Assembly (NCBI GenBank): GCA_025558095.1 | Contig: JAIVFI010000032.1 | Coordinates: 124,001 to 188,000, forward strand | DNA length: 64,000 nucleotides | Origin: Hyaloraphidium curvatum SAG 235-1 | Taxonomy: Eukaryota; Fungi; Monoblepharomycota | Reading direction: 5' to 3' | Shown: one piece after another, positions 6,225 through 18,407 of the stretch | Layout: the number at the start of each line of letters is the position of its first letter | Position numbering within the stretch: position 1 is the stretch's first letter | Program-made: the position numbers and the translations under genes | The notes under the pieces: model-generated | Databases searched by the model: none | Told to the model about the DNA's origin: nothing | The model's input: only the letters and a program-made list of their open reading frames with translations

Positions 6225-9006
6225 TCAGAGATCGTCCTCGAATCCGCCGTCCGAAGAAAGCGCAGCAAAGAGGCTCGCCAACTCACGCCGCCGCGGGCTC
6301 TGGGCCGTCTTGGCGACTGCTTCGGCGACGATCTTGGGCGGTGTGGAGCGTGTCGACGCAGAGTACTCCGATGGTGGGGTTCGGGCCCCGTCGGGAAGAC
6401 TCGCCCTCTTCTGGGACCCGCCCGACAGGCGGCTCCTGTGCTGAGCGAAGCTGTCGGGCAGATGGTGATACTTGCTCCTGCGGTGCGGGCAGTGGCTGGC
6501 TCGCCCAGCTTTCTTCAGGCGGCTTGACCTCCTGATTCCGGGGTGCAGTCCCTCCTCGCCGCCATCTTCGTTGTCGCTCGGGCAGCACGAAGTGTGCAGG
6601 CTGGCCGACTTTGAGGACTTGGTCGGCGTCGTCCGTGCCGATGACCACGCAGAATAGGGCACGGAAGGGAGATGGTCGTCCGCGGCCTCGTCTCGGGGCT
6701 GCGGAACCTGCAAAAGATCGGTGGTCTGTCGTCGGGGCATGAAGTGCAGCATGAGGCCGTTGAGGGCACCGCGGATGCGGTTGATGGCCGTAACGGAGTC
6801 AAGAAGAAGGCTGGGTCCTGTTTCCGTGTGCGATGTTGGGGCAACAGCCGCGTTCCCGCATGCGAGCTCGTCCGAAAGGTCCCGCAGCTCCTTGAAGCGT
6901 CCGAGGTCCGGGATGTCGGACACGTCGACCCACTCCAAGCGCCCGCAGATGTTGAGAAAGCTCCTGATGTTGCCTGCCGAGAATTGCGTGTTCATCTGGA
7001 GGCTTATCTTGCGCAGCGAGCGGTAAAGGCCCATGAGAGAGAAAAGCGTCAGGTCCGTGAGCTGCGGATTGCGCGCTAGATGCAACGCCCGCAAGTTGGT
7101 GCACGTGTTGCAGACCAGCTTGACGGTGTCGTCGGTGAGCCTGCCCCTGCCTCCAACGCGGTGCGAGATCGCATTGTCCGAGAGGTCCAGCACCACAAGC
7201 TTCTGCGACAGCATGCGGGAAACAGAGGACATGGGCAACGGCGTGTGCGACAAGAATAGGGTCCGAATGTCCTGGGAAGCCTTGAGATCCCGGAACTGTG
7301 CGACGGTCGAATCCGATAGGCCCAAACAGTGCGAGACCTTTAGGACATCGAGGGCTGGGTTGGAGACCGTCACGACTTGCAGAACCGCGACCGTCAAGAA
7401 AGGTAGGCCAGACATGTTGAGAGACTTCAACGACCTGAAAGACTCCCCTCTCGGGTAAGAAGCGGGCCCAACGGGCAAGAGAGGCTCCAGGTCGTCCAGG
7501 AGGCGTATGCCGGCGATGTTCAGCGTCTCCAAGGTCTGCATGTTCCGCCTGTGGATGACCAAGGCACCAAAGACTGTTGCGGCACGCAGGTTCTCGAGCT
7601 GCTCCAAATCCAGCTCCTTCAATGCGGGGCAAGCTTCCGCGACACGGGCAACAGCTGCATCAGTCAGGCCCTTACAACGTCCCAGCTTGAGGGAAACCAA
7701 ATGGTTCCCTAGATGCTGCACAATGCGGAAAATGTGTCGGTCAGAAACACCGCAACATCCGGAAAAGTCAAGGCGCTTCAAAACGCGGTCCTTGACAGCG
7801 AAGACCGAGTCGTCCAGCAAGAGATCAAAGAAAGCGTTGTCGACGGCCTGGCAGTCTCTGAGCACCAGAGTGTGCAGCCGCGTGCACCCTTCGCGCAGTA
7901 GCGTTGCCAATCCATCGAGCTGCGACGCATTGGAGAGGTTCAGACTCTGAAGCCGATAGCATCTGGTGAAAGCGGAAAGCTCCAGTGGAACGGCCGCGCC
8001 ATTCTCCGAAAAAGCGCCGGAGAGGTCCAAATGCCGGATGGAGTGAGCTGCCGACAACACGAGGCCGCCGACATGCGTCTTCTGCAGCCGCGACAGCAGG
8101 CTGGCCGCCTTTTCCATGGTCCGGGGCCGCGGGTTCTGGTAAGCGATGCCGGCCGCCAGAATATAGAGCCGGCGGTTGAGGAAGAGAACGGGATAGAGAG
8201 CGTTGCCCGTCGACGGAGCATAGCGTTTCCGACGCCCTTGAACGAGCTTCAGGACTGCGTTTCGGAAGAGTTAGTTAGTTCGTCGCGTTGCGGGAGGCCA
8301 GGCACGCACTCTGGGTCAAGACCTCATCGGGCAAGCTTTCCAGAGTCACCCTCTGGATGGTGTCCTCGTCCTCGAATGCCTTATTGTTGGCCGACTTTTT
8401 CCGACGGTGAAACGCGGCCGAGGTCGGCGCCGGAAGGGCGACCCGACTACTGCTCGCGGAAGGAGTCCTCGGTTGCAGCGTAGGAGGGGGCGGAGGCAGG
8501 GAAAAGGGTGTGGCAAGCTGGACCGGGAGCCGCGGGTGGTCATTCAAACCGCCGGCATGGGCGTCGTCGTTGTCCGTGACGAAGAGCGCCTGTCGGGGCA
8601 CTCGGCTCGTTCCGGCGAGCGAAGAGGGCCACACCGACGACGAGCTGGGATCTGCCTGTCCCGCGTAGGCACCGAAAAGACCCGGCGTTCCGGTAGCGGC
8701 CAGCGGGGTCGGCTGTTCGGGCGTCCACAGGTCCCGCGCCGTGGAGCGGCCCAGAGACCACGAGCCCCGCGAGCCGCCCGAAGCGGGCACGAAACCGCGC
8801 GGCTCTGCGCCTTGCCCCGCTTTCGGTGTGATCTCCGTGCGGCCGGAGCTGAGAGGCGGCCTTCCGGCGGAGAAGGCGGCACCCCAGGCGTCGTCCCCGT
8901 CCGCGACGGTGCCCTCCGAGAGGAGCTCTTCGCCGAGGGAGAGCGGAGCCCAGCCGCCGCGGTGCGCGCCGCCCAGCATGTCGGGCGCGGTTGCGGCGGT
9001 GTGCAC
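6225..9006 (-). CDS. F-box / leucine-rich-repeat (RNI-like) protein
   Basis: Intron 8255-8309 joins LESLPDEVLTQ|ILKLV (F-box) to the 630-aa ORF carrying Cys-containing LRRs (LDFSGCCGVSD, LKLGRCKGLTD, LHLARNPQLTD). Confidence 0.85.
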
Positions 9007-9935: not shown

Positions 9936-10977
9936 ATGTCCGAGGAGAAGCGCACCCTCACCGCCGAGGTGAGAAACATGGGACAGTGTTTCGCGGCAGC
10001 CATCGCCGTCGCCCCGCTGCATTCGGGGTTCCGCTTGTGCGAACAAGTTCATCGGCACCGGCGGATAGGCCTCTGTGGAGCGGCCATGGGAAACCGCCTG
10101 TAGGAGGCCGATTCTGACCTCGTCCCTGCTCGGCCTCCCAGCACGACACCATCTCGGTGTTCCAGGGGCTCAAGACCCTGCCCTGCCGTTTCCGGACTGC
10201 CCTCTGCCCCGACAAGTGCGGCCACTCCAAGGAGAGCGCGTTGTTCGAGGTCAAGTCCTACAACAACGAGGTCGCGGACCACGACACCCGCGTCGGCTTC
10301 GCCTCGGCCGACATCGACGCGGCCTCGCTCGACGTTATCAAGGGGCTGAAGGAGGGCGATGAGGTCCACCTCGTGTGGAAGTTGGTGTCCGCTTCAATCG
10401 ACCCTCGCCATGTTCTGATCGAATGATTCCGCCTCCAGGCACGAGAAGGTCGAGAGGCCCGGCTACTCTGGCGGCGAGCGCACCCTCACCAAAGTTGCGC
10501 CTTCCGGAGGCGCTTCGGCGGCCAGCGCCGAGAAGCGGACACTGATCGCTGAGGTATTGACAATCGGGAATGATTCTGGTCGATCGTCCGCTCATTCAGC
10601 CCTGGGCGCCAGCACGACACGATCTCCGAATTCGAGGGCATTAAGACCACTCCCTGCCGCTTCCGGACTGCCCTCTGCCCAGACAAGTGCGGCCACGCCA
10701 AGGAGGGCGCCCTGTTCTCGATCAAGAGCTACAACAACAAGGTCGACAACGAGGAAACCAAGGTCGGGTTCGAGGTCGCCGACATAGACGCCGAGTCCCT
10801 CGCCGTCCTCAAGGGCTTGAAGGAGGGCGACTCCGTTCACCTCGTCTGGAAGTGGGTTTCTAGAGCCCGGATCTCGATCGCCCGTGCTAATCTTGGCTGC
10901 GAACCAGGCACGAGAAGGTTGAGACGCCCACCTTCTCCGGCGGCGAGCGCACCATCACCAAGGTCGCCAAGAAGTAA
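9936..10977 (+). CDS. Uncharacterised two-module protein with C-x6-CPDxCGH motifs (gene A, 231 aa)
   Basis: Exons 9936-9968, 10142-10380, 10439-10553, 10613-10851 and 10908-10977 are all GT-AG bounded and total 696 nt in frame. There are two internal repeats (PCRFRTALCPDKCGH...HLVWKHEKVE). Confidence 0.9.
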
Positions 10978-11274
10978 GAAGTAGAGCCCCGAGGCGCTGG
11001 CGTTACCTGGTATCCGCCGTACCGCACGGAAGAAAAAGAATCCATGTGTCACGGCATCTGGGGCAAACGCCTGCCCAAAGTGAGCCATTTTCTCGCTTCG
11101 ATGTATCTTTGTTGCGCCCGGCAGCGCGAGTTTCCGGAGTGGCCGTCGCTTCGGATTCAAGGGTCCAAAGACACCCTGAAATCGAATCAGCGCGCAACCT
11201 CTCCCGAAGAGAGCCGCCGCCGCCTTCTCTTCTCCAGCCTTAGCCTTCTTCCAACTGAATACCATCTCTACTCG

Positions 11275-12435
11275 ATGGCTGAGGAGAAGCGGACTCTCAT
11301 CGCGGAGGTGCGTGCCGTGGCGGGGTTCGGTGGGTGGAGGTGGAGGCTCCTTGCTGGCGACACACAATGCATTCGGGCCTCAAGGGCCTTATGGAATGTT
11401 CTCTTAGGCTCATCAGAGTGCCTACCATGGCTTTGGACACCCCAAGGCCGGCGGAAGTGCCGATTCGGCGCTCTCGGTTCCGGGCAACGTTCTAACTCCG
11501 GCCCGGCTCTGTCTTCTTCGTGTCCACTCCCCATACAGCACGACACCGTCGCGGTGTTCCATGGGACCAAGAAACCCCCCTGCCGCTTCAAGACCGCCCT
11601 CTGCCCCGACCAGTGCGGACACTCCAAGGAGAGCGCGATGTTCGAGGTCACTTCTTACCACAACGACGTCTCCGACCACATGCACCACATCGCCTTCCCG
11701 ACCGCGGAGATCAACGAGGCTTCGCTCGCAGTCATCAAGAAGCTGAAGGATGGCGAGGAGGTCCACCTCGTCTTCAAGTGGGTGCCGATGCCCAGCTTTG
11801 CTTCCGTTGCTGATCGAGCCGCGCAGACACGAGAAGGTGGAGAAGCCCGGCTTCTCCGGTGGCGAGCGCACCATCACCAAGGTCGAACCTGCCAGCGCAT
11901 CGGCGGCTGCGACCGAGAGCCGCGAGCTCCTGGCGACCCACCAGACGATATCGGAGTTTGAGGGCGTTACGGAGCGGAAATGCATGCATATGACGTCCTT
12001 GTGCCCCGACAAGTGCGGGCACGGCGGTGCTGTGGCTGTTTTCAAGGTTCTGGGGTGTAAGTCGCATGTCCATCGTTTGCGTCGAAAATCGCTGACCTTA
12101 CCGTGCTCTGAACCCGAAACAGACACGAACTACGAGAAGCCTGGCAAGTACGGCGACGAGAAGCAGCAGCGCTTCCACGTCAAGCTCGCAGGCATCGGGG
12201 CCGAGAAGAACGCCGACGTGGTCGCCAAGATCAAGGCGCTCAAGCCGAACGACAAGGTGGGTCTTCCACGACACAGGTCGCGATTCTCCTGACATCCTCC
12301 GGTGAGGTGGTGCTCGACTGGAACCACGACTATGTCACGAGGGGCGGATCCAAGAGCCCCGAGCGCCCGGTCGTCAAGCTGGAGCCCATCTCGGCCGAGG
12401 CTGCCACCGAGGCTCTCGCCAAGACCACGGACTAA
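11275..12435 (+). CDS. Uncharacterised two-module protein with C-x6-CPDxCGH motifs (gene B, about 254 aa), tandem paralogue of gene A
   Basis: Exons 11275-11307, 11539-11777, 11827-12056, 12123-12256 and 12307-12435 total 765 nt in frame. Motifs are PCRFKTALCPDQCGH and KCMHMTSLCPDKCGH...YEKPGKYGD...LDWNHDYV...PERPV. Confidence 0.85.
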
Positions 12436-12493: not shown

Positions 12494-15400
12494 CTACAGC
12501 TTGGCCAGCTTCGAGCCGATCTTCCAGTCCGTCCGCACGAGATCCGCCACGTCGATGACGCTCAAGTGGGAGTGGAACGGATCCACTTCGTCGACGACCA
12601 CGCGGACCCGGTCTCCGACCTTGTACCTGGGGACGAGCTCGTTCGCCGAACCAGGTCCGCCCTCTTGGGTCGATCTGATCGGCGGTGCTATGTGAGGCAT
12701 CTTGGCCACGAGCCCGCCCAGGTCGGCGATCGCGACCATGGCCGTCGGCGAGAAGCGGGAGAGCGCGGTGACGTAGGCCTCGTATGTCGGCCGCAGGGTC
12801 GACCCGTCCGCTTCCACAATCTCGGGAGGGGGCATTCCGTACTCGCCGGGTATCGTCGGCCCGTCCGGCGCGTTGCGCGCAACGACCATGTTTGGCTGGA
12901 ACCTCGTCCGCACCCGGAAAGGCACCCCGCTCGGCGGATCGACGTGCGGCATCGTGATGCGGTCGAGCGGGTCCGACTTGGCCGTCATGGGATCGTTGCC
13001 GAACCTGGAAAGCACCTCGCGCCGCCGCACCCACTCGAGGGCCCAAAACCTGCTGGTACGCTCCATGGCAACGTCGGCGATCCTCTCGGCAACCTTGCCG
13101 CGCGCCAGCAGCTTCTGAATGTCCTCCTTCGTGAAGGGCGGCGGCTTGGAAAGCAGGACCGCCTTGACGTTCCAGTGCAGGAGCATGTCCGGATACCGAC
13201 GAAGCGGTGAGGTCGCCCTGGTATATCCGACGAAGCCAGGCTGCCGATCACCATGACCGACACCGCCCAGCCCCATGCTAAAGTGCGCGATCGGCTCCGC
13301 CGAGACGGTGCTGGCGGGCATATAGGGCAGCAGCTTCAGGAGACCAAAATACGGGAGCACGCCCGTGCGCGGATGCTTCTCAGCCATGACGCCGTCTACC
13401 AGCGCCCGCAGCTCCGCGACGGGCGGGTATCCCGCCGTCGGATCCACGCGGAATTCGCCACCGAGCCGCTCGTCGCGCTCGGCGACGATCGGATGGGCCT
13501 GTGCGGCCTCGACAATGCCCACCTGGCCCCGGAAGAGCACGGGGACGTCGTTGTCCTGGCAGAACCGCGCAGCGATCCGGCCGGCCATGATCATGCACTC
13601 CGAGACGACCGTCTGTGAGGGGTGGAAGTGCTGGATCTTGGAGGCGCGGAAACGCACGGCCGGTGGCGGAGCCCGGTCCGTGACATAGGCAGGTTGGCGC
13701 GGGGGGTAGGGATAAGGGGAAGGAGGGAGGCCCAGCCGGTCCGTCGAGATCCGATACTCGACCTGGTCCGACTGGTACGCCCCGCACGACGTCCGGTAGG
13801 CAAGGTGATGCTTCGCCAGCTCGTAGATACTGGCCAGCCTGCCCCGGTCCTCGGGGCTGACCGAGGCGGCCCGGTTCGGGGGCCGCACCTTTGGCAGCAG
13901 GTCCGATTCCCAGATGCTCCCCGAGCGGTCCTCGGCCGCGGAACGGAAATCGTCCTCGAGCACGTCGTCCACCGTGTCGTAGTGCATGATGCGCACCTCG
14001 TTCAGCAGCGTGCAGCGCACCCTGTAGTCCGCCAGGTCCCCCGTCCGAAGGTCGAGGCGGCCCGAAAACGTCAGGGCGAACCGCTCGGCGCCGTTGATAG
14101 CGGAACTGCGGTCCCTGAGGTCCAAGAGCTTTCCCGTGGCGGTGTCGGGCAGCATGGGGAGGTGCCCGTTGGGGAGGTAGATGCTCGTCCACCTGAGCTG
14201 CGCGAGCAGGCTCAGCGGATGGTCCGGGCCTAGCCACGTGGTCGGATCGGCGATGTGCACGTCGATCCAGTCCGAAAGATTCGCGTCGCCGTCCGTCGCG
14301 GGGGAGATGGAGATGCCGTCGTCCAGCTCGTGCGCAGATGGGTCGTCGATGACAAAGACGGGTTCGGAAAAGCGCTCCCGCACCGCCGCGTGGGGGTCTT
14401 CGATCTGCTCCGCTGCGAGCCGCGCCGACGGGCTCTCCAGGCCGGACGGAAAAACGACTTCCTTCCTCAGCCGCTCCAGAACCTTGATCTCGGTCCGCAT
14501 GTCGTGCTCAAACTCGCTCGGCATGAGCAACGGCCCCTGCGGCCGCCCTGCCACGGCCTTGGCCGGGCCCCCGTCCGCTCCGGGCAGCTCCCATCCGTCC
14601 GTGATCTGCCCCGCCGCGGGCGGCTCCCCAACCAGCTGCCTCGCCCAGAAGTGCGACCACCTGTCAAGCACCCCCATCCACACGCCCATCCCCTCCCTTT
14701 CCTCGACCGAGGGCGGCGTCTCCCTCCCCGACAGCGCGATCGACACGCGCGCCTCCCGTGCGTAGTCGGTCTGGTCCCACGGGTGCAGCAGGCCCACGTC
14801 TCGGGCCAGCTGCAGCAGCCGCGACATGTCCGAGCCGCCCGTCTTGGGGAACAGCGGGGCCATGGCGTGGATCAGCCGGCCGGCGGCGGAGAGGTAGCGC
14901 GACCGGGGTTCGCGGAGGGCGCGCGAGACGTCCAGGAGCAGGCGGCGTTCGGTGTCGGTGAAGGAGAGGAGCTCCAGGTGGCGCGAGATGTGCTGGAAGG
15001 CTTCCGGCGGCGCGGGCGGCACAAAGGCCGTCGCCGCGTCGTCGCGCCACTTTTGGATGTTGCGGCGCATCTCGACCGCGTGTGACATCCGCTCCATCGT
15101 CATCCGAAAATCCGGGCTCGTCGAGGTGACATAGCGGAACACCGACTCGACGTCCGAGCGGTGCGCGGCCGAAGCGACCGCCAGTCTGAAGCCTCCCGGC
15201 GTCCGATCGATGGGACCACCCGGCACAAACACCCGCACGAGTTCCCTGGAACGGTTCCTGCTGAGCCACGTGAAAACGGCAAAGGCCTCTCCCGGCGTCG
15301 GCCTGGGCGAGCCGGCCGCCCCCGAACCCGCCGTCGCCTCGCCGTAGAGCACGTACGCGGCGACGTCCAGCAGCGTCAGCTTGTGCCCGCGCGCCTCCAA

Positions 15401-16200
15401 ACCGGCAAAGTGCGTCCGCAGGGACGCCAACCGCCGGGACTCGGCCACCTCGCCGGCGTAACGCGTCACCGCCCCGTCGAACTCGGCGAGCGACATGCCG
15501 ACCGTGGGCGGCATCCCCGCGCGCAGTACCAGCTCCAGCGCGTCCCTGCTTGTCCGCAGCTCCTCCGACAGCTCGCGCCAGTCCGCACTGGCGCCCAGCA
15601 CGGAGCGCGCGCGGGCGGCAACGACGTCCGAGGCGGCCCAGCCGGGCACATGGAGCTCCACGTCGTGCTGCCAGTGCACGTGCAGTCTGCCATCCGGAAG
15701 CAGGCTGCGAAAGTCGGGGAATCGGGGATGCCGCTGGGCGGGAACCTGCAGGATGACGCCGGGGCGGTGGCTCCCCTGGCCCCTAGAACAACCGAAAGAA
15801 TTACAATTCGTCGTCAGAACGAACATCAGACACAACAACTGTAGCAGGAAACCCACCATCTGAGCAGCACAAGGTCGCCTACAGCCAGCGGCGGCGGCAG
15901 CTGCTTGCCCTGCGGCGTTTCCTCGCCCTCCTCCTCTTCCTCGGGGTCCGCGGCCTGCCGCTCGCTCGGCACCAGCTTTTCGGGGTCCACGAGGGCGCGC
16001 GCAGCCGGCGACGCGTGGATCCGGCGAGAAACGGGGGGTAGAGGGGACGCGGCGCGGGAAGCGAGGTGCCGTTCTTGCGGGGCGCGTGGCCGGCCGAGCG
16101 CCAACCGGACAGGCACCGCGGCCCCGGAAAATGTCCGTCGGAAAGTATTGCGGCAGATTCCGAGGCCGGTTGGCCCCGGAACGACTTGCCGGGCCGGCAT
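12494..16200 (-). CDS. RNase II/RNB-family 3'-5' exoribonuclease, probably mitochondrial (Dss1/Cyt-4-like)
   Basis: RNB motifs VFVIDDPSAHELDDGIS, VHIADPT, VSECMIMAG and ATSPLRRYPDMLLH. An Arg-rich presequence-like N-terminus starts at ATG 16200, with an intron at 15783-15856. Confidence 0.88.
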
Positions 16201-16343
16201 GCCCGGATCCAAGTTGGCCTTTGGAGGACACAAACAAACCGCGTTGGCGTCGCCCGAGATGGAGGCGTCTGCCCGGCCCTCTATCTCGCCGACTTTTCCC
16301 CCACGAGCACTTCCGTCCGATGCCTCGACAGCGCGACCTACAT

Positions 16344-18166
16344 TCACAACCTCGTGAACGGATTCCACCCGCCCCTCTCCACCCGCAACCACACCGCCAT
16401 CGCCACCACGATCGCCTGCGTGAAGCCGCAGTACGCAATGACCCAGGTCCAGTTCGTCGAGAGGCGTGCGCCGTCGGGCGCGAAGATGGAGTTTGCGTCG
16501 GCGATCGCCCCGAGAACTGGGGATCGCGAGTCAGCACCAGGAACGCACCAGATCCGTCCCCAACGGCCAGCAACTCACTCGGGCCGGTAATCAGAATGCC
16601 AGGCGCGAACCAGATGAAGACCCAAGTAATCTTGGTGGCGAACTGGTGCTGTCCGAACCTGTCGGCCGCGACGTCGGTCACCGTGACTGGGAACGGGCCC
16701 GAAATAATCCCGAGCAGGATGCAGAAAGCCAGGATTCCGGCACCACTGGTTCCGACCGTAAGTATCCACAAGGGGACGAACAGTAGGAGAGTGGCGAAAA
16801 CTGCGTCGACCGCGGTTAGTGGGTGTTGTGCATGAGAGCGCGGCGCGAGGTACCAGAATAGACGAGCATGTTGTACTGGCCCATTGCCTTCATCGTGAAT
16901 CCGCTCAGCACCTGCCCCACCGCCATGAACAGATTGAGCAGCGAAAGGCACAGCGCCGCCGAGATCGTGTTGCCGCTCCCCAGATCCTGGATCTGCTGCG
17001 GAACGAACAGGAACGGCGCAAGGAAGCAGGGCGGGTAGAAGAACGTCATGGCCGACAGCTTCCAGTACGTCGGGTTCCGGAACAGCGTGGCATCCATCAC
17101 CGGGTCCTTCCGCGGCCGCTTCGGCAGCCGCTGTATCATCAGGAAGCCCGTGATGAAGCACACCCCTCCCGACACGATCGCGATGATCCGGTACGCCCAG
17201 CGCCAGTCGTACACGTCCAGGAGGTACTGCGTGAGCGGGATGATCACGGCGCCGCCGATCCCCGCGCCCGACATGCCGATGCCAAAGGCGAGCGAGAGCC
17301 GCTTGCGGAACCAGTGCGTCGGTATCGCGAGCGCGGGGGCCAGGAGAGCCGAGTACCCGAACCCGGTGACGATGCCGCCCACAAAGAGGGTCCAGACCTG
17401 CACGGCGAAGGAGTTGATGATGCCGCCCGAGGCGAGGAGGATGGCGCCGGTGCAGGCGACGAGGCGGTAGGAGAAGCGTTCGGCGAGGAAGCCGGTCAGG
17501 GGGCCGTAGAGGTCCATGCTGTGATGTGGGTGCGCTAGGTGAGCGCTGCAATGAAGGAGGCAAGAAAAGAAGCGGACGTACCCGGTCGTGGTGAGGGTGC
17601 TGGCGAAAGAGAGCACGGTGTTGGCGGCACCGGGAAACGTCGCCTCGGCGGTGAAGTAGTCGGTGAATATCCCGACGTTGGTCGATATCCCGACCACCCA
17701 GAAGTGAACTGCGCGGCACGAACCGAGTCCGGTGAGTTCGGGTGGCCGACAAGCCCCCCGCGACGGGCGCATGCCGCCCCACGCCCCGCCGGCACGCACC
17801 CATGAACATGCAAAACACCGACAGCCAGGCGAGCCCGCCGTCGGGGAACGTCACCTCGTCCAGGTGCGCGTCCCGCTCCGCCTCGGCCCGCGCCTCGCGG
17901 TCCTTCTTCGACTCCGGGGCGCGGGCATCCCAGCCGGCGTCGTCGTCCACGACTATCGTCGGGTCGGAGGGGAGGGAGGCGTCCGAGGGGGGCGGCGGGG
18001 TCGGGGGCGGCGCGGGTTCGGGGCTCGAGGGTGCCGCCGCTGCGTCCGCGGTCCCCGGGTCCGTCTCCAACGCCACACCGGGCGCCTCGTCCGGGGCTGG
18101 TGTTCCCGCTGCAACCGCCGCCGTTTCCTCCGACGGACCCGCCGGCAGCGCCGTGGGGGACGCCAT
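16344..18166 (-). CDS. MFS transporter, monocarboxylate porter (MCT/Mch) family; multi-exon
   Basis: FPDGGLAWL N-terminal signature, then GPLTGFLAERFSYR, HWFRKRLSLAFGIGMSGAGIGG and YDWRWAYR, with multiple hydrophobic helices. Confidence 0.88.
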
Positions 18167-18407
18167 GGTGGCGGTGGCGGACCCGATCACTCGATGATCC
18201 GCCCTCCGCTGGCTGATCGGGACCCCGGCGTCCTTGCTTGCTGGACGAATCGGCGCCTTTGTCGACTCCATGCCCATCAGATTGCTCTCTCCCATGCGGA
18301 CCTGCACCAGCGACCGATCCGCCCCGCCGTTCTCCCAAGCCAAGCCGCCCCATGACCCCCGCGCATCTCGTCCCCCTTGCCCCTTGCCCTTGCATCCCCC
18401 TCCCGCG

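Follow-up and report, generated by a model that had tools for sequence, protein, structure and literature searches.

The flp proteins have been in the literature for more than 20 years (Crouch & Alderete 2001; Steele et al. 2004; Dana et al. 2012, PMC3273482) and still have neither a Pfam model nor a solved structure. Two iron-regulated genes of Trichomonas vaginalis were the first to be found, followed by a Hydra gene, made of a single exon, that came to be regarded as possibly acquired by horizontal transfer (Dana et al. 2012, PMC3273482). The family also goes by TvP14, the fibronectin-like protein-1 of T. vaginalis (PMC2664820). The list of hosts was later extended to Akkermansia muciniphila, Lentisphaera araneosa, Euglena, Glaucocystis, Aureococcus, Porphyridium, Tritrichomonas and termite-gut symbionts, and flp was stated to be absent from all the fungal data available in 2012 (PMC3273482). 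Its function was described as unknown, with a composition said to suggest metal binding (PMC3273482). The family is thus widespread and patchy (Verrucomicrobiota, Trichomonas, oxymonads, euglenids, algae and Hydra), and is most familiar as a textbook case of suspected horizontal transfer into an animal. Here we describe a pair of adjacent flp genes in a monoblepharid fungus, Hyaloraphidium curvatum SAG 235-1, in contrast to the 2012 statement of absence from fungi (PMC3273482). They lie in a 64,000-nucleotide stretch of contig JAIVFI010000032.1 (positions 124,001 to 188,000, forward strand; assembly GCA_025558095.1), hereafter the window, in which all positions below are counted.

The DNA of the window is GC-rich and eukaryotic. 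Exon-by-exon translation of positions 9936-12435 on the forward strand gives two adjacent spliced genes, A and then B, with four modules in total, each built around the motif C-x6-CPDxCGH. The best explanation of the locus as a whole, to which we assign a probability of about 0.6, is that these are tandem flp genes with a local duplication history, whose modules would form OB-like barrels carrying a metal site. The parts of this explanation differ in strength and are taken up in turn.

Membership of both genes in the flp/TvP14 family is almost certain from sequence comparison. In pairwise BLASTP, module 4 (P0001) is 45% identical to the 'flp protein' P0338 of Blattamonas (E 5e-33), and the gene A modules (P0123) are 30-33% identical to P0338 and to the Tritrichomonas protein P0367 (E 9e-14 to 2e-18). 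Word-indexed profile searches returned 591 and 494 relatives, most of them labelled 'hypothetical protein' and belonging to Verrucomicrobiota and Lentisphaerota, with a minority from eukaryotes; Tritrichomonas, Euglena, Akkermansiaceae and Lentisphaerae are all represented. The relatives that bear a name are two proteins called 'putative flp protein' from Blattamonas nauphoetae and a 'putative Tvp14' from Monocercomonoides exilis (E ~1e-40 to 1e-43 in the profile search). Module 4 and the flp family have in common the motifs C-x6-CPDxC(G/N)H, YEKPGKYGD, WNHDYV and PERP. The initial annotation of this DNA, made from the letters alone, had proposed a candidate new family. Because the matches to proteins named flp or TvP14 extend over the whole domain, the family is not new; the relatives that the same annotation expected in bacteria and anaerobic protists did emerge from the profile searches.

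Other resources added no name. Neither Pfam nor NCBIfam gave anything above noise when each exon and the full-length relatives were scanned; the PDB, searched by sequence with P0123 and two profiles, yielded no relative; and the ESM Atlas, queried both by shape and by features, produced nothing but unnamed clusters from Verrucomicrobiota or eukaryotes. A fibronectin identity was considered and rejected, there being no fn1, fn2 or fn3 Pfam match at E values up to 10 in any module or full-length relative. P0140 (1658 aa, 19 stretches), a match of the large search, is an unrelated repeat protein that contains Cys and was discarded as a false positive.

Modules 1-3 are each contained in one 239-nucleotide exon of identical phase and have 65-75% protein identity (75% between modules 1 and 2). 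The three Cys and the motif His are identical in all four modules, which also have in common H-x-T, F-x-G and the complete C-x6-C-P-D-x-C-G-H; a W/F-x-H strand follows in each (WKH in modules 1 and 2, FKH in 3, WNH in 4), and ER occurs in every tail. The YEKPGKYGDEKQ loop and the WNHDYV...PERPV tail are confined to module 4, whose intron positions differ from those of modules 1-3. The YEKPGKYGD loop, present in module 4, is absent from modules 1-3, which on this comparison are a derived short type, new here. The loop is also lost or altered in P0240, in the P0127 cluster and in P0010 (without signal peptide), independently of the Hyaloraphidium short type, and because these members lack or alter it, the loop is typical of flp rather than universal and is not defining for membership. 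No N-terminal hydrophobic segment occurs in the protein of gene A or of gene B. In all these features, and in the DHMHH cluster of module 3, the locus is as first annotated, with two spliced genes, four modules and no signal peptide.

The public gene models agree with this structure in part. All the exon translations of gene A are substrings of GenBank KAI9008533.1 (P0123, 'hypothetical protein'). For gene B, GenBank holds only KAI9008534.1 (P0001, 'flp protein'), a 111-aa protein that corresponds to the C-terminal part and has the last two introns as in gene B. Its start is an internal Met within the module 4 Cys motif, so that it lacks all of module 3 as well as the opening strands and Cys1 of module 4 (11275-12056 affected). 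Homology, splice signals and an orthologue on L032, an ENA metagenome scaffold from an uncultured relative (sample ERZ28593542, 3490 bp, 55% GC), indicate that gene B would encode ~254 aa and that the public model is truncated. The initial annotation had both genes missed and unannotated; this holds for the 5' part of gene B, which is absent from GenBank, whereas gene A is complete there and the last 111 aa of gene B are present.

All eight introns of the two genes are of the GT..AG type, the last one ending in GAG. The first intron within module 4 is in frame and free of stop codons, and one query (window 11933-12256) included it, read through in frame; the other searches for gene B used its separate exons and two database proteins, P0123 and P0001. 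The equal length and splice phase of the three 239-nucleotide exons, as well as flp proteins elsewhere with three modules (P0125) or two (P0010 and P0142, the latter from Euglena), would allow genes A and B to form one transcription unit or to give mixed isoforms, producing a three- or four-module protein. Such an arrangement is highly improbable here: the C-terminal tail of gene A closes with an in-frame TAA, and the GenBank entry for this gene is a 231-aa protein of its own; gene B begins with a separate ATG and a first exon that mirrors the one in gene A, and is preceded by duplicated DNA; and the L032 relative carries gene B alone. Two separate genes are therefore listed in Table 1.

Table 1. 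Positions of the flp-type genes, their exons and their modules in the window
Feature	Position	Strand	Description
Gene A, flp-type	9936..10977	+	5 exons, 231 aa; two short-type modules
Gene A exons	9936-9968, 10142-10380, 10439-10553, 10613-10851, 10908-10977	+	696 nt
Module 1 core	10142..10380	+	239-nt exon; C-x6-CPDKCGH at 10184-10225
Module 2 core	10613..10851	+	239-nt exon; Cys motif at 10655-10696
Spacer, gene A stop codon to gene B ATG	10978..11274	+	Alignable with the 300 nt upstream of gene A
Gene B, flp-type	11275..12435	+	5 exons, 765 nt, predicted ~254 aa; short module 3, then long module 4
Gene B exons	11275-11307, 11539-11777, 11827-12056, 12123-12256, 12307-12435	+	
Module 3 core	11539..11777	+	239-nt exon; CPDQCGH Cys motif at 11581-11622, followed by the DHMHH His cluster
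Module 4, long canonical flp type	11933..12435	+	Cys motif at 11981-12022; introns 12057-12122 and 12257-12306

The L032 scaffold provides the closest comparison for the locus. Its gene B orthologue (L032:2480-3490) joins a short and a long module in one gene, made of an ATG exon ending in EKRTLIAL, a 239-nucleotide short-module exon, a linker exon and the long module. The short module is 51% identical to module 3 and the long one 70% identical to module 4. The L032 long module has no intron at either Hyaloraphidium position and has an intron of its own between KCM and HMTS; the module 4 junctions are confirmed because it reads straight across both. L032 is colinear with window 7163-8996 (a leucine-rich-repeat-type gene, reverse strand) and with gene B, and gene A is absent between the two. 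On the same side, a 630-aa open frame of the window (6225-8117, reverse strand) resembles a leucine-rich-repeat or F-box-type protein, with synteny kept in L032. Just downstream of gene B, on the other side, lies a 1949-aa open frame (window 12494-18343, reverse strand), which by eye looks like several genes read through.

The flp genes of Hyaloraphidium are found at this locus only, none being detected elsewhere in the 31.9-Mb genome. The 239-nucleotide exons are 79% (modules 1 and 3), 77% (1 and 2) and 67% (2 and 3) identical in DNA sequence. The introns that follow these exons, and the 300 nucleotides upstream of both genes, align better than shuffled controls; for example, the spacer 10978-11274 and the 300 nucleotides upstream of gene A give a global alignment score of 13.5, against -6.4 ± 5.8 for shuffled sequences. 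The local amplification that had been proposed for the modules accords with this distribution and with the alignable introns and upstream DNA. A maximum-likelihood tree of 97 domains, unrooted and with most forks unresolved, groups modules 1-3 with the L032 short module in one clade (SH-aLRT 97) and places module 4 outside it, among canonical flp. A short-module profile run against 1.84 billion proteins found the short type only in P0123 and in the L032-type fragment P0124; P0271, in the P0124 cluster, is the same L032-type fragment. The view that module 4 is of the ancestral type, already suggested in the initial annotation, is supported, since module 4 matches the widespread form and modules 1-3 have a clade of their own.

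These data suggest the following course of events. A gene B-like gene with a short and a long module would be ancestral to Hyaloraphidium and the L032 organism. In the Hyaloraphidium lineage its 5' part (upstream DNA, exon 1, intron 1 and the short module) would then have been copied upstream, and a doubling of the short module, before or after the copying, would have produced gene A. The products in Hyaloraphidium would be cytosolic; the bacterial homologues are exported.

The fold was predicted with AlphaFold2 for a 134-aa eukaryotic flp protein (P0002, 124-row alignment) and for module 1 (P0123:1-116, 70 rows). The predicted local distance difference test (pLDDT) scores were 88.7 and 88.3, respectively, and DSSP assigned to both models the element order beta1-loop-beta2-beta3-helix-beta4-beta5, which is the order of the OB fold. 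Strands beta1, beta4 and beta5 are long and beta3 is short. The flp module is thus very probably, as far as the models can be trusted, an OB-like five-stranded barrel, the small beta-barrel that had been suspected from the sequence. In the models, the 16-residue beta1-beta2 loop bears the Cys motif and YEKPGKYGD forms the beta2-beta3 loop. From the order of the predicted secondary structure, the conserved W-x-H-x-Y-V would be strand beta4, with the P-E-R-P segment likewise assigned. In OB folds the beta1-beta2 and beta2-beta3 loops lie on the usual ligand-binding face, and the fold prediction would place the Cys motif on that face.

Structural searches returned barrels of the same general type. 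Foldseek found SSB-type OB folds only, with probabilities of 0.9-0.99 but E values of ~0.03-0.1. The best matches of an exhaustive VIA-align search were SilF with Cu(I) (Z 7.0) and SilF with Ag(I) (Z 6.8), within a SilF range of 5.6-7.0, followed by 3rd4 (Z 6.5-6.8), the C-terminal domain of SilB (Z 5.5-6.1), DUF2500 and SSB, with the program's own warning that Z below 8 is common among unrelated barrels. The top 50 structural neighbours were all OB-type barrels. The OB-like barrel is thus supported, and the resemblance to CusF is a lead only, because scores in this range are common for unrelated barrels.

Conservation was counted in 286 full domains aligned to the family hidden Markov model. 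Cys1 is present in 278 of the 286 (the remaining 8 are gaps), and Cys2, the Pro and Cys3 in 285 each. The preceding Thr is kept in 280, the beta4 His (W-x-H) in 271 and the N-terminal His (H-x-T) in 242. The motif His is found in 212/286 (74%), its substitutes including Asp (23 domains), Glu (21) and Ser (15); it is invariant in all 20 aligned proteins without signal peptide, which are mostly eukaryotic. Thus the invariance of three Cys and one His, first noted in the four copies, extends to the proteins without signal peptide, and for the His it does not extend to the whole family. A signal peptide is present in ~200 clusters and absent from ~50, and the three Cys are kept in both sets. Among 196 proteins with a signal peptide, 2 have a weak twin-arginine pattern and 24 a lipobox-like site.

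Since the three Cys are kept in both periplasmic and cytosolic versions, a mononuclear metal site fits best, and a redox thiol centre is the main rival. From these conservation patterns the most likely role, at roughly even odds, is that the three Cys and a His bind a single metal ion (Zn, Fe or Cu). The rival would make the three Cys a redox-active thiol/disulfide centre, for instance a C-x3-C pair with a resolving Cys, and the protein either a thiol oxidoreductase or a sensor of redox state. In its favour, CPDxC has a spacing reminiscent of the CxxxC in Sco proteins, the ~200 bacterial members are exported (by the Sec route or as lipoproteins) to an oxidising periplasm, in which paired Cys are usually found as disulfides, and a quarter of the domains do without the motif His. 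We nevertheless consider a redox centre unlikely: the predicted fold is OB-like rather than thioredoxin-like, the number of conserved Cys is odd, and no oxidoreductase partner genes occur in the bacterial neighbourhoods. Furthermore, stable disulfides are unexpected in eukaryotic proteins of the cytosolic type, and these keep all three Cys and the His without exception.

An iron-sulphur cluster ([4Fe-4S] or [2Fe-2S]) held by the three Cys and a variable fourth ligand is distinctly unlikely. Three invariant Cys with His, Asp or Glu at the fourth position resemble the pattern of clusters with one non-Cys ligand, but Ser or Ala occupies that position in some members. The expression of flp is iron-responsive in T. 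vaginalis (PMC3273482), and many hosts are anaerobes. With a weak twin-arginine pattern in only 2 of 196, the bacterial members are exported unfolded and cannot carry a cluster assembled in the cytoplasm, and a pre-assembled cluster is therefore disfavoured. For the bacterial members, with their Sec-type signal peptides or lipoboxes, an iron-sulphur cluster thus appears unlikely.

Four further ideas about the Cys loop were tried and rejected. A c-type haem site (CXXCH or CX3-4CH) does not agree with C-P-D-x-C-G-H, which has one residue between Cys and His, nor with the cytosolic type of the eukaryotic members. A Sco-type site (thioredoxin fold, CxxxC and a distal His) matches in its CPDxC spacing, but the prediction is OB-like and all-beta and there is no Pfam SCO1/SenC match. 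Selenocysteine was considered for several bacterial matches with an in-frame TGA, and in the case inspected the TGA is the terminal stop. Covariation of the motif His with the Lys/Glu of the KPG(K/E)YGD loop gave no pattern beyond lineage.

The distribution, neighbourhoods and fusions of flp were surveyed in bacteria. A flp gene is present in 29 of 201 sampled Verrucomicrobiota genomes (~14%), Akkermansia included. A YfbK-like VWA protein lies upstream of flp in 4 of 27 bacterial loci, and the flp neighbours in Akkermansia are sialidase, major facilitator superfamily (MFS) and fucose isomerase genes. Fusions of flp occur as single cases, to a cystatin domain (P0091, 237 aa), to an MliC-like domain (P0219, 337 aa) and to a dual-specificity phosphatase (P0264, 319 aa; without signal peptide). 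In P0235 (590 aa), an outer-membrane factor of the NodT family, a complete flp domain stands at the C-terminus; its operon (L039:3423-9563) encodes an adaptor, a multidrug-type permease and the outer-membrane factor of a resistance-nodulation-division (RND) system. The function is not fixed by any flp fusion or neighbourhood.

The cystatin and MliC-like fusions, together with structural neighbours such as SSB, PriB, cold-shock domains, TIMP-1 and potempins (Z 4.3-6), could also point to a nucleic-acid- or protein-binding domain, like an SSB or cold-shock OB domain or a TIMP- or potempin-like inhibitor, with a Cys loop that merely stabilises it. This is quite unlikely, as most members are exported bacterial proteins, which speaks against nucleic-acid binding, the Z-scores are all in the unspecific range and the fusions are single cases.

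Some further features of the bacterial genes were recorded. Many Verrucomicrobiota flp proteins (among them P0017, P0021, P0031 and P0051) have an N-terminal extension with 2-3 repeats of W..WAKW...D..GHGPD..S.EW and no Pfam match; the repeat contains His and might be another metal-related element. Tandem duplicate flp genes occur in two uncultured Akkermansia genomes (L027:3801-4800 and L028:5318-6300), and one genome (G107) has three flp matches, two of them adjacent.

Several observations weigh against the explanation of the locus as tandem flp genes with metal-binding OB-like modules. In 26% of the 286 domains the place of the motif His is taken by Asp, Glu, Ser or some other residue. The pLDDT falls to 69-79 within the Cys loop in both models, and the structural Z-scores of 5-7 are in the range common for unrelated barrels. 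The bacterial flp neighbourhoods are not conserved and have no metal theme; the P0235 fusion, the only one found with an efflux system, was considered as a CusF-type 'Rosetta stone' and failed as such, its pump being of the multidrug (HAE1) RND type and not Cus/Czc. No metal, cofactor or activity has been demonstrated for any flp protein. The 5' extension of gene B is itself an assignment from homology, the splice signals and the orthologue on L032.

With these points taken together, a metal site is plausible, a reasonable hypothesis that is now 20 years old and that the conservation of the Cys motif would fit. The old hypothesis becomes directly testable with small, soluble, cytosolic proteins, and the four diverged modules of one genome offer a natural series in which the three Cys and the His are fixed and the YEKPGKYGD loop is dispensable. 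A wider proposal can be formulated, which is possible but on balance doubtful: flp would be a distinct metal-binding class of the OB fold, with a CusF/SilF-like function exerted through a Cys3(His) loop in both periplasm and cytosol, and an early-diverging fungal lineage would have acquired one such gene, probably horizontally, and amplified it to a pair of cytosolic metal buffers or chaperones with four modules between them. If true, the short modules, devoid of the second binding-face loop, could differ in metal or partner specificity. The novelty is modest and consists of a fungal flp, a short-module subtype, a two-module architecture, a local duplication that includes introns, the recognition of a truncated public model and the OB-like prediction. 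The function is not established here and the family is not new; a correction to the public gene model is contributed.

Among systems of known structure, the periplasmic Cu(I)/Ag(I) chaperones CusF/SilF and the C-terminal domain of SilB rank first or close to first among the structural neighbours of both flp models and are likewise small barrels. The alignment with Cu(I) SilF has a root-mean-square deviation of 3.1 over 79/80 residues, and SilB-C reaches Z 6.1. CusF/SilF are exported, as are the bacterial flp proteins. However, no sequence similarity is detectable and the resemblance is in fold only. The metal site also differs: that of CusF/SilF is His/Met/Met(/Trp), whereas no Met column is conserved in the 286 flp domains, in which the candidate ligands are the Cys and His of the beta1-beta2 loop. 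The BOF-like 3rd4 (PROPEN_03304), DUF2500 (3q6c) and SSB have the same barrel topology, including a helix that separates beta3 from beta4 (Z 5.5-6.8), but are without the Cys motif and without sequence similarity, and DNA binding of the SSB kind is implausible for an exported flp protein. With fibronectin type I, II or III only the historical name is held in common, an OB-like barrel being predicted rather than an Ig-like sandwich.

The closest described system remains flp/TvP14 itself, whose known hosts also include Clytia. The known flp proteins are single domains of ~14.8 kDa, whereas those of Hyaloraphidium have two modules per protein, and the Hyaloraphidium genes bear introns, unlike that of Hydra. 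In modules 1-3 the canonical WNHDYV is changed to W-K-H-E-K-V and PERP to GGERT. The similarity to flp/TvP14 nonetheless spans the whole domain, and the Hyaloraphidium proteins, like the other eukaryotic members, are without a signal peptide.

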